Source of the DNA: Vitrella brassicaformis CCMP3155
Taxonomy: Eukaryota; Protista; Chromerida
Assembly: GCA_001179505.1 (NCBI GenBank)
Contig: CDMY01000435.1
Span: 1-64,000, forward strand
Length of the DNA: 64,000 nt
Direction: 5' to 3'
Positions within the stretch are counted from its first letter, which is position 1; each line of letters begins with the position of its first letter. Positions 36,860-61,301 of this stretch are shown here, in pieces. The notes beneath the pieces are model-generated. The model was not told where the DNA came from. It was given only the letters and a program-made list of their open reading frames with translations, and did not search any database. Made by a program: the position numbers and the translations under genes.

Positions 36860-39800
36860 TCAGGACAGCTCGTCATGCTGCAGGCACTCCTTCAGCCCAG
36901 AGACGACACCAGGCACGGAGTGAAGCTCCATCCTTAGCTTTTCTCCATCGAGGTAGTTTGTTTCGTGCACCTCACACTCGCCCGTGTTCTCAAAATAGAA
37001 GAACATTTGGCACATTGCATTGGCCACACATGACTCGGCACACTGTTCGACGGCTGCCATGTCGATAAAAGTGCTCTCACGATTGGCTTTCGGTCTGGCC
37101 AGGTGCTTTCGCAGACCAATGTCGGGCTGGTAGCACCCGCAGAGCACTGGCTGGGATGGAGGGGACAGAGTGACAGCACCACTGCTCTCGTCGCGGGATG
37201 AGACGACCATCGGCACTGGTTCAACATAGACAGAGAGACACAAACAGCATTCTATTCTATGTGTTATGGCAGGCGGCCCACCTTTTAGAGCCTTCGACCC
37301 TCTGAGAAGTTCTCTATCGCCCTTGATGGGCACCACTCGCACATACAAGGCCACGTCGGTCGTATTCCTGTCTGTTGTCAGAGTGACGTTCCTGGCCGCC
37401 ATAGTGTCGATCAGCTCCTGCAGTGATATGATTTCCTCGAAGGCCTTTTTTGTGCGCTCGATCAGGTGCCGGCTGAGAAGAACTTCAATCATGTCAGCTC
37501 CGATGTGCAAGCGCCATTTGGTGATGCCTGGTGGGCAGAGGGACATGTACGCATGTGAGTCTATATGTGTGCACGATTCATCAAAGCACCTGTCACCCCA
37601 TTGAACGAGAAATGGACGGTCCAGCGCTCAAGGCCCTCAGCAGCCAGCGTATTGGCGTCGCTGCAGAGCAACAGCCTCGGCCGCTCAGCCGAGGATCCCT
37701 CCCAGTGGTGCAGGTGGCCTCGTTGGGCTCTAAAGCCCTCGAACTCCCGGACTATGCGGGGCTCCTCTTCGTATGTCACTTCGGTGAAGAATGGCCCCGA
37801 CCAACCCCAGGCAATCAGAACGGTTGGAGGTTCATTTCTGCGATCCGAACAAATCAGAGAGATGCCGTCAATTCCATGAGGACGCCTCAAATCCTACTTC
37901 CCGTTGTCGACCATTTGGACCCCACCACAGCAGGCACTGCTCAGGCTGCAGAATAGAAGCAAGCGCATTCTGTCCTCTTCGCTTCGCGCTGATTACTTAG
38001 TGGGGTGCGTGAAGGACCAGACTTTGGTGGCTGTCATATTCTCGAGGTCCAATTGCAGCTCCAGTGCTCGTGACGGCCTCCCTGTACCGGCGCGAAACAT
38101 ATTACCTACACGGCGCTAGCAATTACCCACCTGCACTGAATGGCCCCTTCCGCCCGTTGTCATACCTACACATTCCTCACAGAAACACACAATTATCTCT
38201 GTCTGTCTGTCTATCTGTCTGTCTGTCTGTCTGTCTACATGAGAATGTTGCCGTTCGGCAGCTGCTGAGCATTGTGTTGTCCCAAGAAGGGCGGATCCAT
38301 GTCTTCGCCGATGAATGTGAAGTCACTGCGATAAATATGCAGACGTACGTGAGTAAATGTTGACCCGCGGACACGAGTACCTTGTTTTGCCACCCATGCG
38401 CCACAAAATCCTGCCCGTCTTCCCGCTCAGCAACACCAGCTGGTTGCAGTTCCGCATTGTGATGAGTATGTTGCCTGCATTCTTCCAAGCGCGATGGACA
38501 GATGCAGTACTGGCCTGCGCTGCTGCGACGTACCGTCTGCCGTCCGCTCAGCGTTGTTCGCGTGATAAAAATCGTTTGGAAGGTCAGTCTCTTCGGGTAT
38601 TGCGGGATCAGCTTCGTCTATAAAGTCATCAATTGTCCTCCACTCCAATAGCACATTTCTGCGACAGCAATTGCAAAACCTTGTATCCTTTCCTCCCGTC
38701 ACATGCAGCAATGCCAACCGGGCAGCATCTAAGACATGCAGCACTGCAGAAAACCCAAAAGAAAGAATGGGCGTGCAGGGTGGCGTTACTCAACGATGTT
38801 TCTCTCACTGACCGTAATGTTGGATCCCATTTATCTCCGTGGGAGACATAAGTATTTTATTGTCGCCGTCAAAGAAGAGAAAATGAAGGTCCACGTGTAG
38901 ATAGCCGTGACCTGCTTGCGCATAATGAATGAGTCTTCATATCATCCGTGGACAGATTCCACGCACCCGGTTCGTGTCTATCGACGATCTGATAGGTCGA
39001 GTTGAGCTCATACACAAAACGGGCGCTGTCGTTTGTCCTCTTGTCCCAAAGCACCACATGGCCACTCGGTGTCGCCCCCAACATGCAGGCCCCGCCGCCA
39101 GACCTCCGAGTCCACCACACCAGATCTCCCTGTACCAGATACACGAGTGTCAGTGTATGTGAAATGTACTTGAGTTTCTGTGTACGTCCATACCTCGCGC
39201 GAAACGATCATAAACTGACCGGTCTCCCCATTCCCCATCTCCCACCCAGTAGTAAACAAGTAGAGCTCTTTACTAGCACCAATTTCCTTGTTTCTCCCGC
39301 CTAAGGCCGCCTTCTCCCCCTCCGATGATGGCCTCCACTTTGCGGCCCATCTGGGCAAAGTGCGGTAGCGATCCATTGGCAACGAGTTTCTGAGCATGTC
39401 CTCTTCATTGTGTTGATCTAAAGGCAGGAGCGATCTCACGGAGTGCCCGAGGCGGCCCGGTGGCCCGGGACGGAGAAAGTCAGACGATAACGTCGACATT
39501 GCTTGTACGCTCGTCGCCACGGACTCCCCTCGCGTAAGAAAGGTCCATTCGTAGGGGCTTGTCTCATGTTCAGTGAGATTCTCAGAGCGCCGAACGAGGA
39601 GGCCGGGACCGAACTTGACACTGACCTTCTCCCCTGGGGCGAATGGCTGATCTGCATGGAACACTAGTGTCTTGTTGTCCCGACCTAATACAGCTCTCCC
39701 CGTCACACGCCCGGTCTTGTCGCCAGTCACGTTGAAGAGGCTGTCCAGGTTGCCCGAGATGACCTCGTCGCCCTCCCTGACGGCAATGGACGTCACCTCC

Positions 39801-39967
39801 GACACGTACAGGGCATTCGGCCGTGGGTGCAAGTATTCATACTGACCATCTCCATACGGCCTAACGGCTCCCTCCACAATGAAGCGCTTCCGATCCAATT
39901 CGATTGAGCTTCGAGAGGAGGCAGCACCGCAGAAGGCGAGCGCAGACAGGAGTGTATACAAGCACAT
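36860..39967 (-). CDS. Secreted arylsulfotransferase (ASST)-like protein with N-terminal Ig-like domain and C-terminal PAN/apple domain (paralogue A)
   Basis: Signal peptide MCLYTLLSALAFCGAAS; Ig-like LVFHADQPFAPGEKVSV; DFYHANN; VLIAWGWSG; HFSFNGVT; PAN-like CAESCVANAMCQMFFYFENTGECEV. Confidence 0.75.
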
Positions 39968-40606
39968 ACTGTCAGTTTGATAAGTGACAGATCCCGAGAT
40001 TAGCGCCGGATTAACATTTCCATTTCTGCACGTTTCACTGGCGGTTTTCTCATGGGGTTGACAAGTCTGGCGATCACTTCTACGTGTGTCACACACCGGT
40101 CGTGAGCGGGTCACGCCACACAAGAACATGCGCAACTTGTTTGTTCGCATCCTGGCTGAGGCAATTGTTCCTTCCAATGTGGAGGTGCCCCTGCACTCGG
40201 CATCATCCCGCCCACCACGCGCACACGGACTCGCACTACGTTACAGCGCACCTGGGTATACGACTTGTCTGCCCACACCTTGGTCCCCTGAGGCACTCAG
40301 TCAGCTAGCCGACACCCTTGCTGAAACGCCACTCATTCCTTGGAAGATCCCCCAGGGGATAAGTGAATGATGACCTTCCGTCCTTATCAATTGCAAGTCT
40401 GTGGCACACCACCCCACCTGCCCTGGCTTCAGATCCACCCCGCGCAACCAAATCCTCCCGAGACACGATTTAAGTTCCGATACACAACTTTGAGAAATGT
40501 ATGGAACTGCTTGCAGGAGATACTTTACACAAAGCGCAACGGCAGTACATAGGGAAGTTGTCCGATACCATGAGACACGATGCATGAGACGAAATAGCGG
40601 ACCCTC

Positions 40607-43600
40607 ATGTTACGTCGGAGAATGACATCTGGTGACTTCGTTGACCTTTGTGTCGTCCTGGTTGTGGTCTCCTTTAGTCGTTCCAAAGCAGCGGGTTCCC
40701 ATCGAGCAGTTGTTGAAAGACGCCTGCTTGACGGCAAACGCTTCATTGCAGAAAATGACACCCGTCCGTACGGCAGCGGCCAGTATGAGTACTTGCACCC
40801 ACGGCCGAATGCACTGCACGTGTCTGAACTCACGTCAATTGCCGTCAGGTAAGCGGTAAGCTTCACAGCAGATCGCACAGACACTGTGAATTCTGTTCTG
40901 TGTGGCTGACGCAGAGAGGGGCGTGGGGTTGTCAACGAGCCCGATGAACTGAGGGATCTTTTCACGGTATGTGACGGGACGATTGATGGAAGGGTGGTAT
41001 TGGCGCTTGACAACAAGACTGTCATCTTCGTCCCGACAAGGCCCTTCCTTCCTGACCAGCGAGTCAACGTGACGTTCCGTGCGGGACTAAGAGTGCGAGT
41101 TGACGCCCTCACAAGCCTTGCAATAGGGGCGTACCAGTGGAGCTTTACGGTACGTGGCCCTTCCGGGGTGCCAATGTCGCTGCCCAACTTGGACAATGAC
41201 GTGCGTGAGAACGCCGCTGGTGATACCACGCAGCGTCCGCGAACGTTGCCTCGCTGGGCAGATGCTGTTGAATGTCACGGAGTCGATGGGGAATGTGCCG
41301 AGGACGGTTTGCACTTTTTTTTCAGCTCCTTTGAAAAAGGTCAGCTACACATCCTTTCGTCGACTGGACATCGTGTTTGGTGGAGTCAAAGGAGGCTCAG
41401 AGCAGTCTCAGACTTTCGGAAGCAGCCGTCCGGTTCATTGACATTTACAATCCGGGATGGCGGCATTTGGATTGCCCAAGAACTCGGACCAGGATACGAA
41501 GAGATCAAGAAATACACAGCGGGTGAGCAGCTCAATTCCTGCCACTGATTACAATTGCACATGCGTGACTCTCAGGGCACGGCTACAGCTTGAACCGACA
41601 CTTCTTCGAGGTCTATGAAGACGGGAGTCATCTGCTTACAATCTATACTCCAATAAATGGCAAGGTTGAGAATGTCTTGCAGCTGAAAGACGCTGACGGT
41701 TAGTGAGCAAGTCTCAACAAAGGCAAGGCATCCTCACATTCAGTGGCTGATTGGCACACCTTCATTGTCTGTAACGCGCTCTCTCTCTCTCTCCCTCCCT
41801 CCATCCCTCCCTCTCTCCAGGGAATGTCCTGCTCGAATGGTAAGTAAGAGTGAAGAGGTATGTGAAAAAGGCATGTTGTGTGTCCTTCCGTTTTCAAGGC
41901 GCTCATGCGATGACTTCGGTACACTATGTTGTGGGTAATCGCTGGCCATTGTGATTATTTATGCAGTGGGAGCATCTGATCCGGCGCTTGCAGACAAAGG
42001 CGATGTAGGTGCTTAGATACGGCTTTTTTCACTGCGTGGATGTTCTCTCTATCTGCCCTTGCAGGTCTATCATACGAATTCAGCGGGTGAGCTCGACAGG
42101 TTCAAATACCCTGCTCTGTTGCCCATATGACCTTTCGATCCTGACAGAGCGGACACCTGATGGTGAGTAGGAAAGGCCACCGAAAATGAACCGGCCAGCA
42201 GCCTGACGATTTCCGAAACACAGGCAATTACATCGTATCCATGAGACATGCGAACCTCGTTTTCCTTGTAAGTGGGAGGACTGGAAGGATCCTATGGCGC
42301 CTGGGCGGCGGAGAAACAAGGTCTAACGTGAAAGAAACGCACATCTGTGGCACGGAAATAGAGGGTATAAACGGTGTACAGCGACTTCACGGTCGTCGAC
42401 AAGAACGTTGAGGACAAGAACTCAAGGGATGACCCGCCCTTCATCGGACAGCACAGGCCATATCAGGTGAGAATGGCGACACGCTTGTCCTTGCTCCTTT
42501 TACGTTGAGTGGGATTTTGTGCAGCTGCCGAATGGGAATATCTTGATGTACGTGCGAAGCTGCTGCACTGAAAAGAGCAAGGACTCACTCATCTGATTGC
42601 ACAATCCATGTCAGGCTTGACAATCAGTGGGTTCCAGGCGAGGGTAAGAGTGACTCTTCAGAGCTCAATACTTGTGGACTCGCCTCACTCACCCTTGCAG
42701 AAGTGAACAACAACTTTACCTCAATGGGAAGCCGGCCGTACGCCCGAGCAGTGGAGTGGGAGCTCGATATCGAGGCAAAGACGGCAGTCAACGTGTGGCA
42801 ATACGCACACCCTGGAAGGAGGTATCTTCCTACTGTTTTCCTCATGCCTATAAAAGCAATTGTCTGCAGGCCTTCCGTCTGCTGTGGAGGGGTCCAGATG
42901 ATAGACCATGAGTAAAAAAGGGGGAAGGCGAAGTGAGAAATACAATGAATGCAATATATACTTCAGGTCTGGCCAACCAAGCGTGTTGATCTCTTGGGGA
43001 ATCGGAGGACCCCTCGCTACGGAAATAACGTACGAGGAGAATGCACGTATCGTCCGTGAATTCACGAGCTTGGATATGAGAGGACATCGGGTGAGGAAAA
43101 GTTGGGACATTTAACATCACGTCGTGTCTGTGTCTGTTTCCCTTTAACGCTCAGACCTTTTTGGTCCCATTCTCGGGCCGCTCGACAAACCCCCCTCGCT
43201 TGCTTCTGTGCAGCGATTATGCAAAGGCCCCGGACACGAGCGCCCAGCTAGAAGACTGGAGTATGCGCAGCAGTGACAGATGGCTGGCAACGGATGCATT
43301 TTCGCTCTGCTTTACTTGCAGCGATACACATGTCGTACAACGGGGTGACAGACATTGCGAAATGGCTTGTGTACGTGAGTACTGCTCGAGATCCAAAACA
43401 ACCAGGCCGCTATGTAATGGACAAGACAAAGAGCGCATTCGAAGAGGTTATCACATTGCGTGAGCTTATCAATGCCATGGCGGCGAAGAATGTCACCGTG
43501 ACTGACGGTGCCGGCGGTTGGACGGTGGGAGATGCAGACATCACCTTCCCCCCTGGTGGTGAAGACGGCTCAACTCAATTGACCATTTACGTGCAAGTGC

Positions 43601-44080
43601 TCCCTGTGACACACGGGGCCGTCGAACTCGACAAGCAGTCAAAACCACTCAAAGGTAGAGAAGCCTATTCGCTTCGCTTTCACGTGGTAGGTAGCGTGGG
43701 TCTGTCTGTCTGTCTGTCTGCCACTAGTTCCATTGAGTGTGGTTAGGACCGAGAACGGCACAGTCGTTCTTAGCCCGCCACCCTATTCGGTGCTGTGCGG
43801 CTGCTATGAACCGGATATTGGGAAGGGTGGAGAAGACCTGGAAGAGGTGATCAAAGACATCAGCCTTCGAGCGCTGCAGCCCACTGGTGTCGTCAACATG
43901 GCAGCTGTGGTCCTTTGCCAAAACCTCTGTGCGGCGGAGGACGAGTGTGACATGTTTTCCTACCTGGAGGAGTCTGAAAGCTGCCAGCTGAGGCGCACTA
44001 GCGAATTCGAGCAAGGTTTCCCATACCCTCGGCGGCGGTCGGTGTCAGGTGTCATTTCTGGTCCTAAGCGATGTACATAG
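40607..44080 (+). CDS. Secreted arylsulfotransferase (ASST)-like protein with Ig-like and PAN/apple domains (paralogue B)
   Basis: RPYGSGQYEYLHPRPNAL is near-identical to paralogue A. Also DVYHTNSA, GQHRP, RAVEWELDIEAKTAVNVWQY, VLISWGIGG, MSYNGVTDIAKW, and PAN-like CQNLCAAEDECDMFSYLEESESCQL. Confidence 0.75.
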
Positions 44081-44179
44081 ATCAGCCACGAATTAGGTGC
44101 TAGCCCCACATACTTCATGTGTACTAGCCCCAGTGGCGCCCGTCGTATCGCTCAGCGGCCGGCGGGGCGCCGCATAGAC

Positions 44180-44987: not shown

Positions 44988-46568
44988 TCAGGGCAATCGG
45001 AGTTCTGTTTGGTTTTTTCTCCACGCACACAAATCAAGCACCACATCCAGTTGCGATTCCCAGTCGAGGTTTCTTCCTGAATTATCTGCGATGTCATAGT
45101 ATCTCTCGAGGTCTCTGAAAATATCCATCTTGTCGAGACCCTCTCCCGAGGAGTTCGGCGACCGTGTACCATGCCGACGGGAGTCCAAGACGTACTGCCA
45201 ATGGACGGGGGAATACTCGAACGCTAGGGTCGCGGGTAGCTCTGTCCTTGTGGCTTTACACAGTGCAAAGAGCTCTCGTATTGCCGCCGGCTCGCAACCC
45301 TGGCAGTCCATCTTGAACAAAGGACACACGCACCGCACTACACGTATTTCCGTGTGCCTGTCCGTCACGCTTACCTTCACGAAATTGAAGGCAGCATTTG
45401 GCTGTTCATTCTTCCCCCGATGAATGTTGAATGACGTAGACATAGCTTTGTTCAAATATTGCTGATCGGTCGATGGGGCGAGAAACCACCGAAGAGGTAG
45501 CGACCAAACATCAAAGGACTGATAGTTTCCTCCGACAACTCCTTCCAGTGGTTGTGCTGCAGCACAATGACTGAAATTGCCCTGAGAGCCACGATGGAGC
45601 CAGCAGTGTCACGCTACCTGTCAAGCTCGATTGCGACTGCTTCGGGTCCGCGTTTGCCTTCGGGACAACCACGGTGTTGCCTGCGTTACCTGCCTGGCAA
45701 TGCGCCACAGATTCCTCAGTGTGGTCGCTGGCAGCAAACGGATAGAGCTGCACCCTCTCCGCCAGCTGCACGCATACGCAGACGGGAGACAGGAACGGCT
45801 AGCTTTCTAACATTTTTCCATCATCGTCGAATAACAAAAAAGACTTACTTGAGGGTTCAGGCGCAGATTTTGCGCAAGCATCGCGAAGTTCTTGGGCAGC
45901 GGCTCGAAGACAGTAACCTCGCAGTCGATGGCAGCGAAGGCCAGGGTGCAGGCTCCGATGTTACCCCCTATCTCAAGGACGCGGGGCCGCGCCGGCAGAG
46001 CAGGGTATCTCTGTCTCATTCTCTCCACGTTGCTCAAGTGAGCGATACAATCACGCCAGAATCCGTCCTGTTTTTGATAACCAGGCCAGGAATGTTGTGG
46101 TATTCATTTTCCCACCCACAAAACCTGGGAAATCGTGGAGCCCACTTCATCTGGCTCACTCCAGATCCTGCACGAAGGAATTCACTCTGAATCAGGACAG
46201 GTCTGAGAGATCGTTCTCACAGAAACGGAAACTCGTGGTTCCATGGTTCGGGCAAGCGGTACATGACTTGTTTGACCTGTGATGTACATGGAGATCACAC
46301 TAGTACGTCGAAAGTATTGATATTGCACCTGCGGAGGGCTCTCGACGACCTTGGAGAAACCCGTGAAGACGTCAGCCCATGCTTCCACAAGCATTCGTTG
46401 TTCGGTGCTACTCGCTTGATTCAATTCTGGCTGACGTTGTCCAGCGGAAGGTCCACGAAGCAGGTTTCTCGAAATGGAAACGATTGAGACCGGGTGGTGG
46501 TATACAACAAGCACGGTACAAACACCGAGCACAAGGAGGAAGACACGTGAAAAATGGAGGCTCTCCAT
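44988..46568 (-). CDS. FkbM-family SAM methyltransferase, type II membrane
   Basis: TM anchor RVFLLVLGVCTVLVVY; VLEIGGNIGACTLAFA, VTVFEPLPKNFAML, YPFAASD, KMDCQGCE. Confidence 0.85.
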
Positions 46569-46949: not shown

Positions 46950-47600
46950 ATGCCCGGAGCAGCCATCGACGCTTTGGGGGATCACTTCTTCCTCTGCAGC
47001 CGCGCGACGGCGGAGCGCGTGGTCAAGCACAACACTCTGCTGGACGTCTTCAAGGCCATCCTTGCGGAGGTGGGCATCACGGCTGTCACAGAAGTGCCCC
47101 TGCGCTCTCTCGACATCACCCCGCCCAAACGCCCAGCCCAACAGCCAGTGCATGGACCCCTTCTTCCCCATCGACGGCCAAGGTATTCTGTGCGACGTCA
47201 CAGTGGTCCACCCGTGTTGGCCCGAGAACTCCACCGCCCACCACACTCAAGTCAACCGTAGCCATGCACGTCGGCCGGGCGGAATCGCAGCCGCGGGGAA
47301 GGAGCGAGAGAAGGACCGCAAGTACGGTGCCAACTGTCGGCAGAAGGGCTACACGTTCGTGCCCTTGCGGCGGAGACGCTCGGCCGTTGGGGTGAGGAGA
47401 CCCTCACTTTGCTTCGCCGCCTCGCGCGACGCCGTGTCCCACCACCCGCCAGCTCTGCAGAGGATCGTGCGTTTTTTCATGAGGGTGTCATGAATCATTG
47501 GGGGCAGTTTTTGTCGGTGGCGTTGATGCGCTGGAATGCTTTTCAAGTGTCCTGCCGCGCAGCCTGCGACTCACGGAAGTTGACTTACAGGAAACCGATC
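46950..47600 (+). mobile_element. Non-LTR retrotransposon relic: CCHC-type remnant plus restriction-like endonuclease (CRE/NeSL-like), frameshifted
   Basis: DALGDHFFLC...KHNTL, ILCDVTVVHP, EREKDRKYG, FVPL/AETLGRWG, WGQFLSVALMRWNA, spread over three frames. Confidence 0.85.
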
Positions 47601-47720
47601 GTTGAATACCTGGGGAAGACTATGTTTTGGAGGCGCTCGTTTATCCTATTCTATATCACGCCACTGAACACAAGATGCACCATTATTGGCATAATTTCCT
47701 CCAATTCGGAAATCATAACT

Positions 47721-47880
47721 CGTCGGTCTGCGCTTCGCGCATCCCTCGCTCCGCCACCCATGAATCACTCAGACGAACTGGCCTGCCGTCGGCGCTCCGG
47801 ACACCTTCGGTGCCCTCCGCATTGAGTCAACTGTGGCCAGTCGTTGCTCGGCTCGGCCCTTCGTCCCTCGCCTTCGCAAG
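47721..47880 (-). repeat. GAA-loop hairpin repeat, copy 1 (copies 2 and 3 at 58560-58721 and 62501-62660 on +)
   Basis: Three ~160-bp homologous segments share gggcacc-GAA-ggtgtcc and gcgc-GAA-gcgc stems. Confidence 0.9.
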
Positions 47881-47990
47881 TGCATCGGTTGCGTCAAATC
47901 CACGTGAGTGACTTATCATCGCGACGAGCATTATTGTTGTTGTTCACCTCTTTTTTTGTTCAGCGGACGAATCGAATTGTTGAGGGGAAC

Positions 47991-48779
47991 ATGATGTCCC
48001 TGATGCCGGTGTTGGCTGCCATTGTGGTCAGAACAATGGCATCGGCCGCGATATATCCGCAATCCTTCCATGACTTTATGGAGGAGATTGTGAAGCCGGA
48101 TGTCGAAGTCCAGCGTAGCGGGCTTCCTGTACGTGGCCACGAAAAGGCGACGAACCTGTGGCGTTCTCTCAGAGGCTTCCTCTCGCAACTGGGGCGTAAT
48201 CTGCCCTCGCGCGTCTCAGGGAAGGGAGATGAAGCAAAGCCAGCTAAAGATCTGTCTCGTGAGCTCGCGTATGGCCTGTTTGCGAATTCCATGAAGATTA
48301 CTGATGCGTGCGAGGAGCTATCAGCACGCCGAAACTGGACACGCTACGAGCCTCTCCGGGGCGCCAAGTACTTCATCGCAATTAACCTCTTCAACAATGA
48401 GCTGACTCTTGCCGATCTCACTCTTCAACTGCTCAAACTCGTTGACTTTCTCGGCCCGGGGAGCGTCTTTCTATCCATCTATGAGAACGGCAGCTCGGAT
48501 CACACCAAGGAGTATCTGATGAATCTAGACATCCTCCTTGGCCTGTATGGTGTGGCGCATCGCATTGTCATGGAGAACCAAAACAGGCCCGGGGGTGTGC
48601 ATCGCATTGAGTACCTTGCTGCAGTGCGAAACAGAGCCCTGGAACCGTTGGCAGACCTGTTGTGTGTGGTGACTGTTGTGTGTGGTGACATGACCTTGAC
48701 AGGCACATTCATGTATGAATTCAAAAGTGCAGGTTCATTTCAAGCCCATTCGGGAAACCGGCGTCACGACCGCCACTGA
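47991..48779 (+). pseudogene. 3'-truncated GT69 (CAP59/CMT1-like) duplicate
   Basis: KYFIAINLFNNE...FLSIYENGSSDHTK...RIEYLAAVRNRALEPL. Homology to the 57-58 kb gene stops at 48655, before the FLNDV (DxD-equivalent) region. Confidence 0.85.
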
Positions 48780-49244: not shown

Positions 49245-49745
49245 TCAATGTTTCCCCGCCCCAAATCTTTTCTCAAGCCCTGCAGTATGGTTTTCGGCGG
49301 CTCTGCCGCTCCTCCGCCTGTCCTTTTGATGTCGATGTCCCTGGCTGCAATGGTTGATGGTCATGATGTTCTCCCGGAATGCGGCGAACTCATCGGCGGG
49401 ACTGGAGGGGGGGCGGGGCTTGCGCTTGGCGAACATCTTGAGAAAGTCCATGGTCTTCTTTCCCCATCTGCCGAATGTCTCCGCGGCGAGGCACAAAGCG
49501 GAAGCCAGCTGCTTGGGCGGTTGGACCATACTTGTCGATCTTGTCTTTCTCCGCAAGCTGAGCCGCCTTGCCACCTGGAAGCTGTGCACCACGCCGATTG
49601 ACTGTCCGGTGGAAGGGAATGGGGGAGTTGTCAGGGCGGCAGGGGCGGGCGATGGTGACGTCGAGCAAGTAGTCACTGCCGTCGATCTCACAGTAGATTT
49701 CCATGCGCTGCCCGTTGGGAAACTGCAGTCTCTTGGCGTATGATC
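49245..49745 (-). mobile_element. Second RLE non-LTR retrotransposon relic, same subfamily as 46950-47600
   Basis: YLLDVTIARP, AEKDKIDKYG, FRFVP/AAETFGRWG with a frameshift. The spacer ...VNRRGAQLPGG parallels ...VNRSHARRPGG. Confidence 0.85.
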
Positions 49746-50683
49746 TGCCTGCAACCACACAAACAGAGAGAGAGAGCGACTGATAATGGCTTAAGGGTCT
49801 CCGCCTCTCTTTCAGGTTTCGATTCCCTATCTTGGCTGCTTTTGACCTCTGCGTGCTGCGTACAGAGTGTGCGTGTAAGCACCACCACACAGAGTGTCCG
49901 TGTCGTGTTATTGTCGCTGGTTGGTTGCTTATTGTTGCTTATTGTGCTTGTCGATGTTTTGCTTATTATGTCCAACGACGAGACTTACGCCAATGCATGC
50001 ACACGACTGACGGGATTTCTACCTGAGGGATACATTCGTATTGCCTGAAACGGCTTACGTTGCTGAAGTAGAGGGTGAGTGTCCTCTGTGGGGTAGTATC
50101 GGTTGGTCACAAATAGAGACGGCTGAGCTGACTCACCAATTCGTGTACTGACTACGGTCTTGGCGGATCATTGAGGTCGACTGGTGTGTGCCTCTGCTTT
50201 CCTGGGTCCCTGCCGTCATCCCGGCCGGCGAACATGTGTGCATTTACATACGCGACGTGCATCGACGCCAATCCTGTTGCACAGGTTTCTGCATGACGAC
50301 TTCGCTGTGCGACGCTTGCGTCTTCTGCTTGTGGGAGTGTGATGGCGTCGAAAATGATGGCGTCTCGTCCTCGATTTCATTCCATCCCCTTCCATGGCCC
50401 TTCTTGTTACGATTGATACTGCGTTGTCGGCAAGCGCTCGTCATTGTAAAGATACGAATTGTCAAGGAACAGACTAACAGACTAAGTGCCTGACTGACTG
50501 AAGAGATTGTACTCTGCTTTCTCGGTATGCCGACCGACCGAGAGACACATTCACCCTATCTTATCTAGGCCAGTAGTCTTTGCCTATACCGGAAGCATTC
50601 GGCACGTCTTCATCTCGTCTAAAATATTCATGAGCCTGAGGCACACAGGCCACTCCGAGACGGAAGTCACTGCATAACAGTAG

Positions 50684-52861
50684 CTATATGGGCTTGTCTG
50701 GTGGAATGGGGAGGTTCATTTGGAGGAAGGCAAACTCGACGCAGTTGCCGCCAGCATGCTGCAACCCACGCACACACGGACATACATGTCCAAGAAATGT
50801 ATTCTTCCACCTGGATATTCGGCTCTTTGTGGAACATGACGTATCTGCACCAATAGTATCACACGCGACACCGAGGCACACACATCTATGCACGTCTATG
50901 TTCATTTGTGTGCGTGTGTCTGTGGCCTGACCAACCCGTTGTTCAGAAAGGCGGTGAGCAGCTCCCTGTTCATTTCGACCACCTGCTGTTGGTGGTCGCC
51001 GTACACATGAACTTCTATCAGCACCTGTGGGTGACACATACACACACAGAGAACCGACGTGCACCTGTGTGACGACGCATCTCTATGGGGGTGGTCCTTC
51101 CTTGCCTGGCGTATTGGTGGCCTTTTCCTCCACTCTCCGCTCGTCAGAAGCGGGGTCAGCGACTTGAACCTAGATGAGCACATACACAAAGTACATGGAG
51201 GGATGCGTGTGTGTGTGTGTGTGTGCCATCCTCGTTCTCTTTGAGTCCGCTTGCTCACTCGGCCCCCTCGACATCGATCTTGAATATGTCGATCTCTCGG
51301 CTCTCATGACCCAGAGCACTTGCGACATAGACAGACAGACAGACAGACACTAGCCTTCTGTGTGTGCTGCCCCGCTCTCACGTGATGATCTCGTTCAAGC
51401 CTGCTGTGAGGGGCCCCGGATCGTCGGCCTTCAGGTTGGCCCTGAACACATCAGACACGACACGAAACGGCACAACACAAACACCATTCCTTTGGATGGA
51501 CCATTCCTTTGGATGGAAACGAGAAAGGCGTCCGGTGGCGCTTACCCCTTTCCCGGCTGGTCGATGCCCCATCTATGAAAGTGGACATGCTCGGGCTTGG
51601 CCTCCGGAACCGCCACAGTGTGATCAAACTACGCATGCCCGGACAGATACCAAGGACAGACATCGATGAAGGGCCAGTCTTGTGTGTGTATTCTGTGTGC
51701 ATACGGTGTGGACTTCGCATCCGAGTGTCTTGTGTACGCTGTCCTCGAACGACCACTGAGACACAGGGATGGAACGCACAGCACATGAGGTGGAAAAGGC
51801 CACCCTTATGTACCTCGTTGGACCCACCCACAGAGTACACCAAGCATGGCTCGCCTGATGCGTTGCTGCGCGACCGGATCCTGCGCGCAGATGTGCACCA
51901 CATGTGAAGCCATAAACGAGTATCCGCTGTCTGTCTGCGCGTGTATGCAATGCGCATGTGAGTGCGGGCGGTACCCACCGGTCAGGATCGCAGACCCACT
52001 TTCCACCGTCACCAAGGGTGCCCAATCGCACCTCAAACCTGCCACACGTTAGTGTGTGCACACGTCGACGAGCGTGTGTGTGGCTGCAGCCCTCACTCGC
52101 AGCTCCAATCGGGATCGAAGAACATCTGGTAGAAGGTCTGGCCATTGGCCCCGCTGATCTTGCTAAGCCACTTGGGGTCCATCTGCGGAGAGACACACAT
52201 GAGTACACTCATGAACGTACACAGAATCCTTGTCGTATATCTATGTGCACCTGTCTGTGCCACATGACGGCTCTGTTCTTCTTTCTCAGCTCCCATCTCT
52301 GCGCCTCCGTGTATTGGCTCGAATCGTAGAATCCAAGGGACTCCTGCACACCATCAACATTCGCCTTCCCATTTTCATTACATGTTTGTACCCCAGCCAT
52401 GAGAGCGAAGGCAGCGGGCGATGTGGCAGCACTCTGCTGCTTGGTGATCTGCCGCTGTTGGTCCCTCGACGACGTGACAGACGACCGAAGCCCCGAACCT
52501 GTGTGTCAACCGGGCATCACGTGTGATGGTGTGTCCTGTATTGCACCTCTAAGCAGCTTCTGGACCATCTGCGTGACCTGCCACTCGCCCACAATGCCAT
52601 CGATGCCATCCTGTGTACATATACACATACCAAATTGATAGGCATAAGTCCTGGTCCGTGTGTATACAATGACGAAGGAATGGCGTATAGACATGAGGGC
52701 TTAGCAAGAAGTGTGGCCCCGGTTGGCACGCTTACATCACGTAGGTCACCAAGTTTGCGACGAATGTCCTGCAATGTTCGATGAAGCAAATTCACGTCGA
52801 TTAATACGAAAACAATAGCGGCGAAGAACAGGAAGACAGCTGTTCGCACCTCCACCTCCAT
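50684..52861 (-). CDS. Methyltransf_22 / METTL24-like FkbM-related methyltransferase, type II membrane
   Basis: TM AVFLFFAAIVFVLI; RLGTLGDGGKWVCDP, CLVYSVG, WSFE...LGCEVHT, LGHESREIDIFKIDVEG, VLIEVH, FHKEPN, NCVEFAFL. Confidence 0.85.
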
Positions 52862-53995: not shown

Positions 53996-55688
53996 ATGAC
54001 TGGGGCGGTGGAGGTGGCGAATAGCAGTGCGTTGCGTGGCGCCTTCTCTTCAATCTACAAATACACCCGACGAGCCTGATGGTGTCCCCAACGACCCCAC
54101 CGTCCGCACGGACCTGTTCGTGTCGAGGTTTTGGCCAAGCTGCCGCGAGCTGTCGATCGATTTCTGCGTGACCGACGCTGACGCTCGCTGCAACCAGGGC
54201 AAGACCACCGGCACGATCACCCGCGAGAGGGAGAAGCTCAAGAAGGACCACCATCTTGACGTGTGTCGGCTCAACCGCATGGACTTCACGGCATTCATCG
54301 TGACGTGTGACGGCGTCTATGGGAGGGAGGCCGATCGCTTCATTCGCCGCTTGGCCGAGCTCATCAACAAGAGGGGCGGATGGGACAGATATGGCACTGG
54401 CCGGGTCGAGCAATGGATTCGGGCGCGGCTGTCAGTGTGCCTGGCTCGTTCGGTGTCTGCGTGTCTGCGGCGGCCCAGGAGGAAGGGCCGGTGGCATTGG
54501 CTGTATCAGAGGGGGCGTTGGGGTGATGGGGCTGGGATGTTCGTGCCTGGGGAGCCTCTCATTTTCTGAGGGCGCCCCCCTGTGAGTAGGCGTGTGGGGA
54601 TAGTGTGTGTTGATTGGCCTGGATGCCTGTCTGTCTGGTTGGCTGTCTGTCTATCTGTCTGTCAGTCCGCATGTCTGTCCATTCACGTGTGCTGCTCATG
54701 AGCATTGTTTGTCCATTTGAGTGTCTGTAGCTCGTTATCATTGCATCGCGATCGACTGTTCATGTTTGTTCGTGCCGTGGACCAACGCGTGTGTGGTCCC
54801 CGGCGCATCGTTACACATCAACCATCTACAAATCGGGGGAATGGGGGAGGAACAAGGAGGGGAACGGGCACGCTGGGCCGGGGAGCACCAGGGAAGCAAC
54901 AGACAGCGTTCGCCTATTGCTAGAGGAGTTCTTGCGTGATCGGAATATCCGATCCGTCGTTGACGCAGGATGCGGGGACTGGCAAACTACAGCCGGAGAA
55001 TAGCATCCATGTGTGTGTCTCTGTACGCAGGGAGTGGACAGCTACACTGGTGTGGATGTGGTGCCGGACATTATTGCTCGCAATCAGCAGCTGTATGGAA
55101 GTCACAACCGGACCTTTCGCGCAAGCAGCATGTTGGAGAGAGAAGCCCTCCCTCCCGCAGACGTGAGCGCAGCGAGAAAGAAGACTGTGTCCACAATTCA
55201 CTGCCTCTCTGTTTTCTCTCTTGTAGCTTTGATGACGAAGGATGTAGCCAGCTGCTCCGTCCATGCCTGGCGGTGCATGGCTCATGGGTTTTTCTGTCTG
55301 TCTGTCTGTCTGTCTGTCTGCAGGTGCTGCAGCACCTGCCCACGCCAATGGTGCAGCGATTCCTCGAGTCCCACCTCACTGCTGATAAACGTGTGCACAA
55401 CTACAAGTATGCCCTCCTCACCCACGATAGATGCAACGTCAGTCGGGGGCGGAAGAGGGAATACGCATCTCAGATGGCTGTGCTTTTTGGTCTCCTGCCC
55501 ATTTCCAGGTCACCAAGGTGGATTCCCGCTGCCAAGATAACCAGGACCTGGACATGCCACTGTATCTGTCACCGTTTTCTCTGCCTGGCCGCCATTCTCT
55601 CTTCTACCGCTGGCTAAACCGCCCGGGGGGCGACGATGAGGGCGAGAAGGCCACTTTGCTTATCGATTTCACTTTTCGTACTTTGTGA
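53996..55688 (+). pseudogene. Class I SAM methyltransferase interrupted by a retroelement insertion
   Basis: Removing 54063-54833 gives ALRGAFSSIYKSGEWGRNKEGNGHAGPGS, then VVDAGCGDWQ, YTGVDVVPDIIARN, VLQHLP. Start may lie in an upstream exon. Confidence 0.8.
54063..54823 (+). mobile_element. 5'-truncated RLE non-LTR retrotransposon with 10-bp target-site duplication ATCTACAAAT
   Basis: RTDLFVSRFW, IDFCVTDADA, REKLKK, FIVTCDGVYG, RLSVCLARSVSACLR. Identical 10-mers at 54053-54062 and 54824-54833. Confidence 0.9.
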
Positions 55689-56843: not shown

Positions 56844-58450
56844 TCACTGCAGATGCCTTGATGGCACGGTACGAAGGTTCAGCCGAATGTCTGGTAAGTC
56901 AGGATGTAGCCGCTCGTATCCCCTCATCCCGTCACATCGAAGAATTCCTTGGGGTACCGTCCAATCGATCGTCCCATCCTGATCTCGAATCCCGAGAATA
57001 TCGTACTCAAAACGCCGGAGCTTCACAATCTCTTCATACGCAATGTTTTTCTCCCCATAGCTTATTTTGACAGCAGGAACTACCATTATTCGGTCCCAAC
57101 CGAGCTCCCAAAAGTCCTTGCAAAGGAGAGTGCACTCACTCCCTGAACATTCGCCGTCCTTCAACTCGCCGCGACGGAAACGGACTCCGTCCTGAAGGAA
57201 AGGTTTTGGGTTCAACACCGCCGCTCCGTTCCAGCAACATGCCACTTGCGCTGGTAGTCCTTCGGAAAAGCGCCGCTTGGTCTCTTCATGCTGTGAGGGG
57301 TTGTATGATGGGTAGAACAACGTGCTGCCATCGATTGATCGAGACACCCACGTATCGTAGAACCAGAACGGCCAACCGTTGCATTTCACGTTGTTTTCCG
57401 GACATGCCGAGTAGTCCAAACCTGAAGACCAACACCCACACCACACACATGCCCACCTAAACCTCCAGTGGCACCAATCACGACTGACCACACGTAATAT
57501 CGGCGTCATGTATGGTGGATTGCCTAAGGAGCTCCAAAATGTCGGTGTCACATATGTAGACGTCGTTGAGAAAGACAATTTTGCTGTTAGACTTCGGTTC
57601 ATCGCCGGAGCTCCATTCTGCCAGCGGTTCCAGGGCTCTGTTTCGCACTGCAGCAAGGTACTCAATGCGATGCACACCCCCGGGCCTGTTTTGGTTCTCC
57701 ATGACAATGCGATGCGCCACACCATACAGGCCAAGGAGGATGTCTAGATTCATCAGATACTCCTTGGTGTGATCCGAGCTGCCGTNNNNNNNNNNNNNNN
57801 NNNNNNNNNNNNNNNNNNNNNNNNNNNNNNNNNNNNNNNNNNNNNNNNNNNNNNNNNNNNNNNNNNNNNNNNNNNNNNNNNNNNNNNNNNNNNNNNNNNN
57901 NNNNNNNNNNNNNNNNNNNNNNNNNNNNNNNNNNNNNNNNNNNNNNNNNNNNNNNNNNNNNNNNNNNNNNNNNNNNNNNNNNNNNNNNNNNNNNNNNNNN
58001 NNNNNNNNNNNNNNNNNNNNNNNNNNNNNNNNNNNNNNNNNNNNNNNNNNNNNNNNNNNNNNNNNNNNNNNNNNNNNNNNNNNNNAGAGGCTCGTAGCGT
58101 GTCCAGTTTCGGCGTGCTGATAGCTCCTCGCACGCATCAGTAATCTTCATGGAATTCGCAAACAGGCCATACGCGAGCTCACGAGACAGATCTTTAGCTG
58201 GCTTTGCTTCATCTCCCTTCCCTGAGACGCGCGAGGGCAGATTACGCCCCAGTTGCGAGAGGAAGCCTCTGAGAGAACGCCACAGGTTCGTCGCCTTTTC
58301 GTGGCCACGTACAGGAAGCCCGCTACGCTGGACTTCGACACCCGGCTTCACAATCTCCTCCATAAAGTCATGGAAGGATTGCGGATATATCGCGGCCGAT
58401 GCCATTGTTCTGACCACAATGGCAGCCAACACCGGCATCAGGGACATCAT
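56844..58450 (-). CDS. GT69 cryptococcal-mannosyltransferase (CAP59/CMT1)-like glycosyltransferase, spanning the assembly gap
   Basis: MMSLMPVLAAIVV leader; RIEYLAAVRNRALEPL, KIVFLNDVY, ADITCG|LDY, FYDTWVSRSIDG, QVACCWNGAAVL, CSGSECTLLCKDFW, RIMVVPAVKISY. Confidence 0.9.
57786..58085. other. Assembly gap (300 N)
   Basis: Run of N in the sequence. Confidence 1.
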
Positions 58451-59219
58451 GTTCCCCTCAACAATTCGATTCGTCCGTTGAACAAAAAAAGGTGAACAAC
58501 AATAATAATGCTCGTCGCGATGATAAGTCACTCACGTGGATTTTTACGCAACCGATGCACTTGCGAAGGCGAGGCCCGAAGGGCCGAGCCGAGCAACGAC
58601 TGGCCACAGTTGACTCAATGCGGAGGGCACCGAAGGTGTCCGGAGCGCCGACGGCAGGCCAGTTCGTCTGAGTGATTCATGGGTGGTGGAGCGAGGGATG
58701 CGCGCGAAGCGCAGACCGACGCGGGGTATGAGTTATGATTTCCGAATTGGAGGAAATTATGCCAATAATGGTGGGGGGACATCCATGCAATAATGGTGCA
58801 TCTTGCCGTTATGCATAATTGCCTTTCAAGATGTGGTTTTCCTGGCCCGTCCAGTCGTGTTGTGACTAAGTAAGATGGCGCCCAAGTACGCACCAGTCGT
58901 GGACGCTGCGGCGCTGCGAGAAGGGGATTCGCCGAAGATGCTGTGGTCCATCATCGGAGCTGGTAAACGGAAAGAACACCATGTGTTTGTGGCGAATTGT
59001 ATGGATCTCTGTGTCAGTGCTGCTGGTGTTTCTGGTAGCAAATTCGGGGCTATTGCTGCTGAGGTGCCAGGAAGACGTATCGCAACTCAAGAAGAGTGTC
59101 GACGCCCTGAGGTAGGGAGATGGGTACATGGGCAGGATGGCAGGCACACACAAAACACATTGCCTTTGTGCACATGTGTTGGTCAGGAATATGCTTCTGC
59201 GACATAGAATGCGATCACT

Positions 59220-60020
59220 CTTCCCTCCCCACCTGCATTCCGGAGACACAAACAACATATTCACGTGCAACATATCACTCCAAGTACCCCATACCCAGTA
59301 TCTCGACATCTTCCTTCATATGTTGTGGCCAGTCCTCCACCAGCGACGCACGCACAGCGCCGGATCGTCTCTCAAGGGCACAGGGTGCTCACTCGAATCG
59401 GCCAATGTGCGCGTCAAGATGGAGCACAAGCACAACAAAAAACAGTGCAGAAAGTATTTTACATGGGGCCTCCACCGTCCTAAGCTGCAAGCAATTCAGG
59501 AAGCTCTTCTGCTCAAAAGACATCATCTGTTGGGCGGGACGTGAGAAATGTCAATGAGATTAGTCGCGGTGCATTTCATATGGTGAGGGAATTGAAGGAT
59601 GTGTCACTGTGATGGTGGGTCGTTTGTGCACGCAATGAGGGAAATTTTCCCCGTTGATACCTTTTTCGATTCTCTTCGTAGACCAATATGTAGATCGACA
59701 TATGTAGTAGGTCTGCTGGGGGAGAAACTTGCATTAACCGTAACACTCGTCTGTGTGTCCGTGATACTCATACAAATACAGTCCCATCAGCACGCAGAGT
59801 CAAACGCTCAAGGGGAGGAGGGATCAATCCCCGCCCCATCAGCACACCCCAGTCCCGCAAACCCTCCCCTCCCTCCCCCACGCAGACAGAAGGTAGTCGC
59901 ACGCGCGAGGGCGATAGACAAGCGAGAGCCAATCCATCCAGACACATGATGATGATGGTAGTAGGTCTGCTTGACTGATGGATGACAGAGGTTGAATGGA
60001 CGAGTGGGTGTAGGGCTTTA
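59220..60020 (+). repeat. Dispersed repeat family A, copy 3 (internally deleted AP2-like repeats plus tail)
   Basis: FPPHLHSGDTNNIFTC resembles repeat 2 at 15.8 kb. SLKGTGCSLESAN...KKQCRKYFTWG...KLQAIQEALLLKRHH is the in-frame version of repeat 3. Confidence 0.85.
59718..59957. mobile_element. 240-bp non-coding insertion with 14-bp TSD and (GAT)n end (SINE-like or truncated retroelement)
   Basis: GTAGTAGGTCTGCT at 59704-59717 and 59958-59971. The paralogous sites at ~16540 and ~29240 lack the insert. Confidence 0.85.
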
Positions 60021-60207
60021 TTCTGTCTGGCTTTTCAAACTGAGATGTGTATGTACTAGAGGAGCCTGCCATTAGTGTCTTAGGTCCGTGCATACCCTAC
60101 GGCACGTGCTTCTTTATGTGTTGCCTCATCAGCCAGGTCGAGGACACTGGTTTGAAATAATTTCGCATGATAACGCCATCGTCAATCAGTTAACCTTGGT
60201 CACGTTG

Positions 60208-61301
60208 ATGTGTCTACGCAAAGCACTCAGCCTCCTCTTCGCTGCGGTCTTATTGATAGTTTTTCTCAGAAGACGCCTCACGGCGGGAACGGGGCCCCCC
60301 TTGCGCCGAATTACGACCAGGGACGATTCTCACACGAGCGAACGTTTGCTCGATGATGGCGCCGTCGTATTCCGCTCGGAAAGTCGTGAACTCAGCCGCG
60401 GACCAACGAATGGCACTGTCTTAGTATTGACCATCGTCAAGGATGGCCAGTCCTGGGGATCCCAGCGGAGCTTTCACGACTACCTGAAGCTCATCTCTAA
60501 CCTCGGAGTCAACAAGGCAGATTTGTCTCTGGGGCTCTTGATCAGCGATGCAAATGAACACCGGGACATCAAGCAGATTCTTGACTCTTCCAACGAGGAT
60601 TTCCGGCGTCTGTGCATCATCCGAGAGCCAGAGACATTCCGTAAGATGGAGGGCGAGAGACGGGATCGGCACAACGAGGATATACAGCGACCTCGGCGCA
60701 AGCTTCTTGCCCGGATTAGGAACTATCTGGTGACGACGGCGCTCCATGATGAGGCCAACGTGCTGTGGATCGATGCAGACATGATCAAGATACCTGATAA
60801 TCTTCTGCCGACGATGATCAAGTCAGGTCACCCCATTTTGGTGCCGTCCACGTTTATTGGCGACCTGTATTACGACCGGTAGGCACGGACGAATCATCCA
60901 AGTGTGGATATACGTAGCGTTGCTGTGTGTTACTTCCCCCTAGGAACACATGGGTGGGTCCCCGCACGGAGCCAACAAAAGAACAGCTGCTTCGCCTTCG
61001 GGAAGGGGACAGCGCTGCTTTCATTCCAGAGCAGGCCCCTGGGAACATGTATCTCGACCAATTTAAAGACAGAGAGGAGGATTTTGTTCCTATAGACGCC
61101 GTTGGCGGAACAGTTCTCTTCGTCAAGGCGACGCTGCATCGCCAAGGAGTCTTATTTCCCCCCTATCATGTGATCGGCGCGGACTGGGGTGGTGAAGGAT
61201 ACGACGGAGTAGAGACCGAGGGACTGTGTTATGTCGCTGCGACAATTGGCGCTGCTTGTCACGGGATGACACACTTCGATGCGATACATTCAGCGGATTA
61301 G
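60208..61301 (+). CDS. GT62 Anp1/Van1/Mnn9-like glycosyltransferase, type II membrane, one intron
   Basis: TM ALSLLFAAVLLIVFL; LSLGLLISD, RDRHNEDIQRPRRKLLARIRNYL, VLWIDAD (DxD), YD|RNTW, IDAVGGTVLFVKA, VETEGLC. Confidence 0.9.

Follow-up and report, generated by a model that had tools for sequence, protein, structure and literature searches.

Nuclear genes for secretory enzymes are grouped non-randomly, beyond chance, between positions 36860 and 61301 (~24 kb) of the window, that is, the whole 64,000-nt stretch of contig C435 of the coral-associated alga Vitrella brassicaformis that was analysed. Two predicted mannose-adding, three methyl-adding and two sulfate-transfer-type enzymes adjoin each other here, and we tentatively read this lineage-specific grouping, at somewhat short of an even chance, as a Golgi mannan or glycoprotein-glycan module formed by GT62, GT69 and the anchored methyltransferases. 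That all of the genes serve one decorated sugar coat we only infer. The two limits of the interval are the stop codons of its first and last gene, and the following features were recognized:

36860 to 39967, minus strand: ASST-PAN gene A, multi-exon, placed by mapping of P0023 and colinearity with P0027.
About 40607 to 44080, plus strand: ASST-PAN gene B, of the same architecture as gene A and head-to-head with it.
44988 to 46568, minus strand: SAM methyltransferase of putative FkbM type, anchored in the membrane at its N-terminus, with some four exons and an approximate 3' end.
46950 to 47493, plus strand: non-LTR retroelement C-terminal domain fragment, similar to 49393-49890.
47736 to 48655, plus strand: inverted partial duplicate of GT69, comprising 255 nt upstream and codons 1-222 (47991-48656).
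49341 to 49890, minus strand: 5'-truncated non-LTR retroelement tail, a genome-wide repeat.
51258 to 52861, minus strand: Methyltransf_22 (METTL24-like) methyltransferase, multi-exon and anchored at its N-terminus, 3' end approximate.
54000 to 54569, plus strand: non-LTR retroelement tail fragment, directly upstream of the class I methyltransferase.
54818 to 55686, plus strand: putative class I SAM methyltransferase, in which four exons can be recognised, identified via paralogues.
56844 to 58450, minus strand: full-length GT69 (CAP59/Cmt1-type), 456 aa, two exons, from the transcript protein P0003.
57786 to 58085, no strand: assembly gap of 300 N inside the GT69 gene.
58600 to 58710, no strand: short dispersed repeat, about 105 nt long, with copies also at 47736-47840 and 62543-62660.
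60208 to 61301, plus strand: GT62 (Anp1/Mnn9-type), 342 aa in two exons, with a type II anchor, from P0001.

The genes were identified through matches to Pfam and NCBIfam, through annotated proteins and through one transcript. All eight items of the original prediction were found where it had placed them and in the order that it gave (two head-to-head ASST genes, an FkbM-type methyltransferase, a GT69 fragment, a Methyltransf_22 methyltransferase, a class I methyltransferase, GT69 and GT62), with non-LTR retroelement tails and a short repeat between the genes; the PAN/Apple domain that ends each ASST had been missed. A signal peptide or type II anchor had been claimed for every intact member and is visible in the sequence of six of the seven intact-looking genes (both ASSTs, FkbM, Methyltransf_22, GT69 and GT62).

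Random placement of the families, which had been picked after the locus was seen, brought six of them into 25 kb in none of 20,000 trials (maximum three), and in none of 4,000 placements each with family sizes enlarged three- and tenfold; the density therefore exceeds random placement even with tenfold families. Families other than ASST have few loci genome-wide, which counts in favour of non-random grouping: about eight loci for FkbM, about seven for Methyltransf_22, about six for GT69, five for the class I subfamily and a single locus matching PF03452 for GT62. The ASST family, with at least 30 loci in the Vitrella genome, is the one likeliest to be nearby by chance. As a control, 46 long ORFs in roughly 117 kb around 13 methyltransferase paralogue loci yielded mixed housekeeping families only, with no glycosyltransferase among them. 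Since these flanks are ordinary, the families do not cluster as a rule, and the control also shows that Pfam can find genes in the Vitrella genome. A second co-location of GT69 and ASST was observed on contig C484, where the two lie 17 kb apart with no recognisable gene between them (only marginally unexpected, at an estimated 0.08 or so, and hence a point against the module). The cluster itself was not repeated at the four homologous loci inspected, where synteny had been proposed as a check: the three GT62 homologue loci (Pythium and two other contigs) have no GT69, methyltransferase or ASST neighbours, and the one GT69 homologue locus has no GT62, methyltransferase or ASST neighbour.

The GT62 and GT69 genes are the best defined of the group and lie head-to-head, 1.76 kb apart. 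P0001 aligns at 100% with 60208-60879 and 60942-61298 and matches the Anp1 profile (PF03452) over positions 19-262 of 263 (151 bits against a cut-off of 28.8, E 5.4e-44). Its anchor, MCLRKALSLLFAAVLLIVFL, and a WIDAD (DXD-like) motif, a candidate counterpart of the DXD of yeast Mnn9, were read in the sequence, and the predicted activity is that of an alpha-1,6-mannosyltransferase using GDP-mannose. P0003, a complete MMETSP transcript protein, covers all 242 positions of the CAP59 profile (PF11735; 226 bits, E 5.7e-67). As this transcript shows, GT69 is expressed, and it is the only gene of the locus with transcript evidence. The Vitrella pair shares full-length Pfam matches and an N-terminal anchor or signal with the fungal mannan polymerase GT62 proteins (Mnn9/Anp1/Van1) and Cryptococcus Cmt1/Cap59 of GT69. 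Yeast has several GT62 paralogues, which work as hetero-complexes, whereas Vitrella, an alveolate alga, has one gene; the adjacent, divergent arrangement with GT69 is absent at the four homologous loci inspected. The two families, which the original prediction tied to fungal capsule and mannan structures, are not purely fungal: the nearest GT62 relatives (34-49% identity) include Pythium and Physarum besides chytrids, and those of GT69 include Galdieria as well as Blastocladiella and contigs of public read and metagenome assemblies. The GT69 paralogues of Vitrella form one Vitrella-only group (FastTree only, support 89), which points to lineage-specific expansion.

The assembly gap within GT69 can be closed from inside the locus. 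P0003 is 100% identical to the gene to the left and right of the gap and 94% identical in the last exon, the flanks as written are one frame apart, and P0003 residues 123-166 fall in the gap. The inverted copy bridges it with 131 nt (48356-48486), the missing stretch being codons 122-166. Because this near-identical copy and the complete transcript-derived protein agree, the true gap is 131 nt (44 codons) and the GT69 gene is continuous and in frame. The copy itself is not a complete member: 47991-48656 covers only positions 1-108 of the CAP59 profile, is 98.6% identical to P0003 over residues 1-222 and, being truncated inside the catalytic domain, is likely a pseudogene.

Three SAM methyltransferase genes of different families lie within 15 kb of the GT69/GT62 pair, two of them (Methyltransf_22 and FkbM) visibly anchored. 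The FkbM exon at 45810-46103 matched TIGR01444 (fkbM_fam) over profile positions 2-57 only, at E 6e-8 and 33.3 bits against a curated cut-off of 37.7, and also Methyltransf_23 (E 0.0024); neighbouring exons carry the anchor MESLHFSRVFLLVLGVCTVLVV and an FKMDCQGCE motif, read by eye in unjoined exons, and the closest paralogue is on C815. For the Methyltransf_22 gene, the exon ORF 51627-52208 scored 30.8 bits against PF13383 (cut-off 22.4), the anchor is MEVEVRTAVFLFFAAIVFVLI, and the motifs DGGKWVCDP, VHFHRWG and IDIFKIDVEGAE, together with further exons, align with a paralogue on C819. The class I gene has no Pfam match of its own in its window exons, which share 59-76% identity with paralogues on C361, C405 and C254, and the intron-less paralogue L019 matches Methyltransf_11 (22.0 bits, cut-off 21.2). 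Compared with three paralogues, a 28-nt deletion after the conserved splice acceptor shifts its frame; in addition, a donor reads GC in place of GT and no anchor exon is recognisable, and the gene is possibly a decaying or damaged copy. On C254 the class I paralogue lies less than 200 nt from decayed FkbM-like pieces, so that the pairing of the two predates a duplication, which counts in favour of the module.

Retroelement tails and the partial GT69 duplicate do sit among the genes, as the original prediction had it. For the tail at 49393-49890, at least 137 genomic matches were counted, and a full-length relative on C630 carries RVT_1 upstream of the same domain. The fragment at 46950-47493 matches this tail over 47065-47391 (E 2e-14) and also resembles repeats at other loci. 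The piece at 54000-54569, which matched no Pfam family, is 85% identical to a repeat on C361 and similar to one at C819, and the short repeat, with no Rfam or tRNA match, occurs in at least 17 genome copies (77-100% identity). Rapid turnover, which had also been proposed, holds for the GT69 fragment, whose arms are 97-100% identical to 58704-57617 as an inverted repeat, and does not hold for the ASST pair, the N-terminal 270 residues of which share only about 35% identity.

These observations bear on an explanation which is quite possible, if doubtful, namely that the co-located genes share no pathway: a fast-rearranging region would gather lineage-specific, dispensable secretory enzymes with unrelated substrates through segmental duplication and retroelement-mediated rearrangement. 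Within 16 kb there are three retroelement tails, three copies of the short repeat, the inverted partial duplicate and the possibly broken class I methyltransferase, and the size of the ASST family, the apparent GT69 expansion and the unconserved neighbourhood of homologues elsewhere would all be in keeping with such a history. It accounts poorly, however, for six consecutive secretory-bound transferase families, uninterrupted by any recognisable gene of another kind, a density at which random placement fails; nor does the single-copy GT62 come from an expansion, and the flanks of the methyltransferase paralogues elsewhere hold the ordinary mixed genes described above.

The ASST-PAN pair stands at the left edge of the interval and belongs to a large Vitrella family. 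Gene A consists of a signal peptide, an Ig-like (Big_5-type) domain, an arylsulfotransferase propeller and a C-terminal PAN/Apple domain (PAN_1, E 1.2e-6, ORF 36863-37546). The annotated Vitrella protein P0023 maps to it at 39967-38238 and scores 44 bits with PF14269 (cut-off 27, E 2.5e-11) and 30 bits with PF05935 (cut-off 24.2), and P0027, a 664-aa ASST and PAN paralogue, is colinear with the whole gene A arm, to 36881. Gene B is colinear with gene A in tblastx, from 39898/40727 out to 36884/44074, and P0027 maps to it at 40742-44074; its own ASST profile match is weak and confined to one exon (PF14269, 42217-42312, 24.9 bits), and PAN_1 lies at 43733-44077 (E 1.4e-6). Gene A keeps the YHxNS and GQH motifs, and YHTNS and GQH are readable in the exons of gene B. 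The PF05935/PF14269 domains are common to the Vitrella genes and bacterial ASSTs (E. coli AssT and Streptomyces 9KF6), and 9KF6 is the solved structure nearest to the Vitrella family (P0027 against 9KF6, E 3e-25). Two conserved histidine motifs, YHxNS and GQH, align with it in P0027; the bacterial enzymes have three active-site histidines. Unlike the bacterial enzymes, the Vitrella genes are eukaryotic and intron-rich, with a signal peptide and the added N- and C-terminal domains.

The original description of every recognisable gene as a carbohydrate-modifying enzyme was overstated on this account, as ASSTs are PAPS-independent aryl sulfotransferases and not known carbohydrate sulfotransferases. 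No family with the PAPS-binding sulfotransferase fold (PF00685, PF03567 and their kin) came up in Pfam scans of the interval ORFs; the genes that resemble sulfotransferases belong to the ASST type and not to the PAPS-dependent carbohydrate sulfotransferases. The ASST class is held separate from polysaccharide sulfotransferases that use PAPS (PMC11625862).

A division into two unrelated modules may also be considered, with the two ASST-PAN genes and the O-methyltransferases acting on phenolic, small-molecule or wall-polymer substrates and GT69 and GT62 acting separately on glycoprotein mannan; this is rather improbable. The namesake of the FkbM family, a small-molecule O-methyltransferase, would agree with it, as would the nearness of the Vitrella ASST family to the Streptomyces enzyme with its histidine motifs kept. 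Characterised ASSTs move sulfate between phenols (bioRxiv 10.64898/2026.10.08.757629; PMC13426309). Bacterial ASTs can, however, sulfate sugars too, according to one review (PMC13426309), the Methyltransf_22 and class I genes lie nearer to the glycosyltransferases than to the ASSTs, and no phenolic-pathway gene was recognized in the window. Joint gain of the island by horizontal transfer from a fungus or bacterium is highly improbable: fungi are the best-known source of GT62 and GT69, bacterial polysaccharide loci commonly contain FkbM and class I methyltransferases and the ASSTs are bacterial-type, but the genes are split by spliceosomal introns and carry eukaryotic anchors, their nearest relatives differ from gene to gene (for ASST, a Vitrella-wide family), GC content is even with the flanks, and paralogues of each family are scattered over the genome.

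The core of the tentatively preferred Golgi glycan module would be the divergent pair of predicted mannosyltransferase genes, the expressed GT69 and the sole GT62. In the Golgi lumen, GT62 may elongate an alpha-1,6-type mannose chain that the N- or O-glycans of secreted or wall glycoproteins carry, to which GT69 would add alpha-1,3-type branches, and the anchored methyltransferases may O-methylate terminal sugars, as on the oligomannose N-glycans of other microalgae. The secreted ASST-PAN pair might act on the same surface material via a carbohydrate- or protein-binding Apple domain, or be mere neighbours. Duplication and retroelement insertion would have shaped the locus, leaving as traces the old head-to-head ASST pair, the recent inverted partial GT69 copy and the possibly damaged class I methyltransferase.

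Several points weigh against this module. The substrate that FkbM itself methylates is a small molecule, the donors of ASSTs are phenolic and those bacterial ASSTs that have been characterised act mainly on phenols, the copy of the class I gene looks damaged, and GT62 and GT69 homologues elsewhere are without such neighbours. The mannose-rich wall of the original prediction fits poorly with the sister alga Chromera, whose wall (the only chromerid wall analysed) contains about 80% Glc and 3% Man (PMC9293442). Microalgae are known to make O-methylated oligomannose N-glycans (PMC6344472; for the spread of methylation, PMC7773692), and anchored SAM methyltransferases beside mannosyltransferase genes would fit the Golgi O-methyltransferases of Chlorella, Chlamydomonas and Porphyridium N-glycans, although Vitrella, unlike those algae, has no reported methylated glycan. 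A 2019 study asked for the mannose O-methyltransferase to be identified (PMC6344472), and none is named in this microalgal glycan literature (PMC6344472, PMC7773692).

The fullest version of the proposal, a first alveolate glycan biosynthetic cluster in which the Methyltransf_22, FkbM and class I enzymes are Golgi mannose O-methyltransferases on GT62/GT69 chains and ASST-PAN sulfates the same glycan without PAPS, is unlikely. Co-located pathway genes are rare in protists. The co-located fungal exopolysaccharide genes of the Aspergillus galactosaminogalactan cluster offer a possible analogy, with glycan-making and glycan-modifying secretory enzymes side by side in a eukaryote; the Vitrella locus differs in having other enzyme families, with retroelement tails and pseudogene pieces between them.

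The locus supplies concrete candidates for the enzymes that O-methylate microalgal glycans. A further suggestion from it is that chromerids, which are photosynthetic relatives of the malaria parasites, may make a fungal-style mannan-type glycan that is lacking in their parasitic cousins. Should the genes prove functionally unrelated, the locus would be a clean case of duplication and retroelement insertion shuffling secretory enzyme genes.

The grouping of secretory-pathway enzyme genes between 36860 and 61301 is real and non-random, and it was moulded by duplication and retroelement insertion. The inventory given for this interval by the original prediction was confirmed through profile matches, protein mapping and paralogue alignment, as listed below. 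The gene models are those of the mapped proteins P0001 (GT62), P0003 (transcript-derived GT69), P0023 (arylsulfotransferase, ASST, gene A) and P0027 (a Vitrella paralogue with ASST and PAN domains); the FkbM-type, Methyltransf_22 (PF13383, METTL24-like) and class I methyltransferase (MT) genes and ASST gene B were searched exon by exon rather than as spliced models.

Genes of the cluster, with the evidence for each
39967 to 36863, minus strand: ASST gene A (P0023 mapping and P0027 colinearity)
About 40607-44077, plus strand: ASST gene B (colinear with gene A and P0027)
46568 to about 44991, minus strand: FkbM-type MT (TIGR01444 exon match)
47991-48656: GT69 fragment (codons 1-222, with 255 nt of upstream sequence)
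52861 to about 51258, minus strand: Methyltransf_22 gene (Pfam exon match)
54818-55686, plus strand: class I MT (paralogue identity)
58450 to 56847, minus strand: full GT69 (P0003 mapping)
60208-61298, plus strand: GT62 (P0001 mapping)

The cluster ends at 61301, and no related gene lies in the 15 kb that follow on contig C435 (76,464 bases, of which the window is the first 64,000). A telomere or contig-end effect finds no support, as neither a telomere repeat nor a further family member was encountered up to the contig end. GC content across the window is even (0.47-0.58), without a compositional island. Outside the cluster, an ORF at 20552-21043 (plus strand) gave a weak match to the folate/biopterin transporter family BT1 (E 2.4e-4, just below the Pfam cut-off).

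Six-frame family searches of the genome located a single GT62 locus, about six GT69, about seven Methyltransf_22 and about eight FkbM-type loci, five loci of the class I MT subfamily seen in the window and at least 30 ASST loci. When these were placed at random on the 72.7-Mb genome, no 25-kb window held more than three different families in any of 20,000 trials, against the six observed; with family sizes multiplied by ten, five families coincided in 0.1% of trials and six never did. Random placement overstates the significance, since the families were picked after the locus had been seen. A simple class argument gives the same answer, namely a grouping beyond chance: even with 5% of all genes (reportedly about 23,000 in the Vitrella genome paper) encoding secretory transferases, a run of about eight genes would be expected to contain five more independent ones some 0.007 times per genome. 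The 46 long ORFs taken as a control from about 117 kb around 13 MT paralogue loci included no glycosyltransferase and matched only a mixture of housekeeping families (YCF48, GFO/IDH/MocA, DNA polymerase A, ankyrin, TCP-1, RRM and Myb).

Part of the grouping recurs within the genome. On contig C254, decayed and rearranged FkbM-like pieces with internal stops, nearest to the FkbM gene of the window, lie less than 200 nt after a class I MT paralogue (C254:109123-110397; L025:9123-9947 and L026:23-397 in the fetched stretches). This second, decayed pairing indicates that the association of class I MT with FkbM predates a segmental duplication. On contig C361, 15 kb separate a class I MT paralogue (L027, C361:7039-7686) from an FkbM gene of family PF05050 (L004, C361:22642-23106), with an additional FkbM match at C361:50379-50528. 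A candidate second cluster on C484 was rejected: it comprises only a GT69 paralogue and a tandem ASST pair 17 kb apart, the intervening ORFs having no Pfam family, and given 30 ASST loci such proximity is only marginally unexpected.

The GT62 exon retrieved a 342-aa V. brassicaformis CCMP3155 protein that is 100% identical to the window at 60208-60879 and 60942-61298. GT62 and the full GT69 gene are divergently oriented, with 1.76 kb from the GT69 start to GT62. An assembly gap of 300 N (57786-58085) falls within the GT69 gene, and as written it puts the flanking open frames (ORFs 57662-58531 and 57478-58137) off by one position. An inverted, near-identical copy, with arms of 100% (47950-48355 against 58086-58491) and 99% identity (48487-48655 against 57617-57785), spans the gap with 131 nt (48356-48486). 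P0003, a complete 456-aa protein from the MMETSP transcriptome collection, matches both flanks at 100% identity (residues 1-122 at 58450-58085; residues 167-265 at 57783-57487), and its residues 123-166 lie in the gap; 43 whole codons and two split ones again come to 131 nt. Because the inverted copy and P0003 give this length independently, the true GT69 sequence runs through in frame without a break, and the gap as written is 169 nt too large. The fragment is broken off within the catalytic domain. It shares 98.6% identity with P0003 over residues 1-222, including one difference (D in P0003, N in the fragment) in the gap stretch, compared with 100% for the full gene on both gap flanks; the transcript therefore derives from the full GT69, and the fragment is a distinct sequence, not a pure assembly duplicate.

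The two ASST genes stand head-to-head and their exons are colinear one by one. The annotated P0023 (469 aa; PF14269 44 bits, PF05935 30 bits) covers 39967-38238 of gene A, and P0027 (664 aa, ASST and PAN_1) is colinear with the entire gene A arm down to 36881. Both genes open with a hydrophobic signal sequence and carry a C-terminal PAN/Apple domain (E about 1e-6) that the original prediction did not list. Among solved structures, the one closest to this family is 9KF6 (E 3e-25), a Streptomyces ASST (bioRxiv 10.64898/2026.10.08.757629), and the YHxNS and GQH histidine motifs aligned with it are found in both genes. As the two are only about 35% identical over their N-terminal 270 residues, the duplication is old.

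Among the methyltransferases, the FkbM-type gene has an anchor exon and, later, a visible KxDxEG-type motif. Its exon scored just below the cut-off of the NCBIfam profile TIGR01444 (E 6e-8) because it holds only a third of the profile; the genome search with PF05050 missed this gene and TIGR01444 recovered it. The Methyltransf_22 gene has one exon above the Pfam cut-off, other exons that align with a paralogue, and an anchor. Its anchor peptide (52778-52855, minus strand) resembles the one in a class I MT paralogue from contig C405 (L016:2415-2495, minus strand; 52% over 27 residues, E 0.009), which may reflect chance transmembrane similarity or a shuffled first exon. The class I MT exons share 59-76% identity with paralogues on C361, C405 and C254. 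Singly they matched nothing in Pfam or the PDB; an intron-less paralogue passes Methyltransf_11, and the look-alikes picked out by a language model are class I MTs from giant viruses, phages and bacteria. In the window copy 28 nt are deleted just past the conserved splice acceptor, GC takes the place of the GT donor seen in its paralogues, and no anchor exon is recognisable. A retroelement tail lies directly upstream, and the copy may be decaying.

Three intergenic fragments (46950-47493, 49341-49890 and 54000-54569) resemble one another and dispersed repeats, the second having at least 137 genome matches. Since a long copy on contig C630 carries RVT_1 upstream of the shared domain, they are 5'-truncated tails of non-LTR retroelements. 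Together with the inverted partial GT69 copy, these tails bear out the interleaved retroelements and duplications that had been predicted. Another dispersed repeat, some 105 nt long, lies upstream of each of the two GT69 copies and again downstream of GT62 (47736-47840, 58600-58710 and 62543-62660). It has at least 17 genome copies (77-100% identity), matched no Rfam family or tRNA and was rejected as an RNA gene; a short mobile element and a regulatory element common to these sites are both possible explanations. Microsatellites of the (CTGT)n type (54570-54730, 55290-55320 and many introns), also present intergenically and at paralogue loci, read CLSVCLSV and yield spurious hydrophobic ORFs able to mimic membrane anchors.

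Among 1.84 billion representative proteins, a HMMER scan detected 808 GT62 relatives, the nearest named ones being from Pythium oligandrum, Physarum polycephalum, chytrids and Mortierella; GT62 is therefore not confined to higher fungi. For GT69, Galdieria and Blastocladiella are among the relatives, and the four placeable Vitrella GT69 paralogues form one group in a tree built with FastTree only (support 89). A comparable neighbourhood was absent from all four homologous loci inspected (the nearest GT69 homologue, P0004, and GT62 in Pythium and on two other contigs), and word searches surfaced no Chromera homologue. The Pythium oligandrum locus (L044, SPLM01000006.1, 71864-94995) is a tandem array of three GT62 genes with protein kinase genes of the elicitin-domain type in between; the protein of its first GT62 gene has two Anp1 domains. 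Ten long GT62 proteins included no fusion with GT69 or an MT, their only partners being other glycosyltransferase domains or an oxygenase. In a protein of 1193 aa (P0153), a GT32-like DXD region occurs together with GT2, GT4 and GT62 domains.

The common role of the clustered genes would be the building and methylation of a mannan-type glycan. Such a role is reasonable where the GT62/GT69 pair and the MTs with anchors are concerned: O-methylated oligomannose N-glycans are widespread among microalgae (PMC7773692), and a 2019 Chlorella study described the mannose O-methyltransferase as still to be identified (PMC6344472). For the ASST genes the case is weak, because their class is PAPS-independent and kept apart from polysaccharide sulfotransferases (PMC11625862); bacterial members of the class can, according to one review (PMC13426309), sulfate sugars. 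The original prediction holds as an observation, and its reading as a single glycan-making cluster is partly supported. The mannose-rich wall proposed alongside it is a poor fit, since the only chromerid wall analysed, that of Chromera, contains some 80% Glc but 3% Man (PMC9293442); the enzymes are more likely to act on the glycans of glycoproteins. The individual genes belong to known families and eukaryotic glycan gene clusters are a known idea; a search of the published literature found no description of this cluster's gene grouping, which is itself a new version of that idea.
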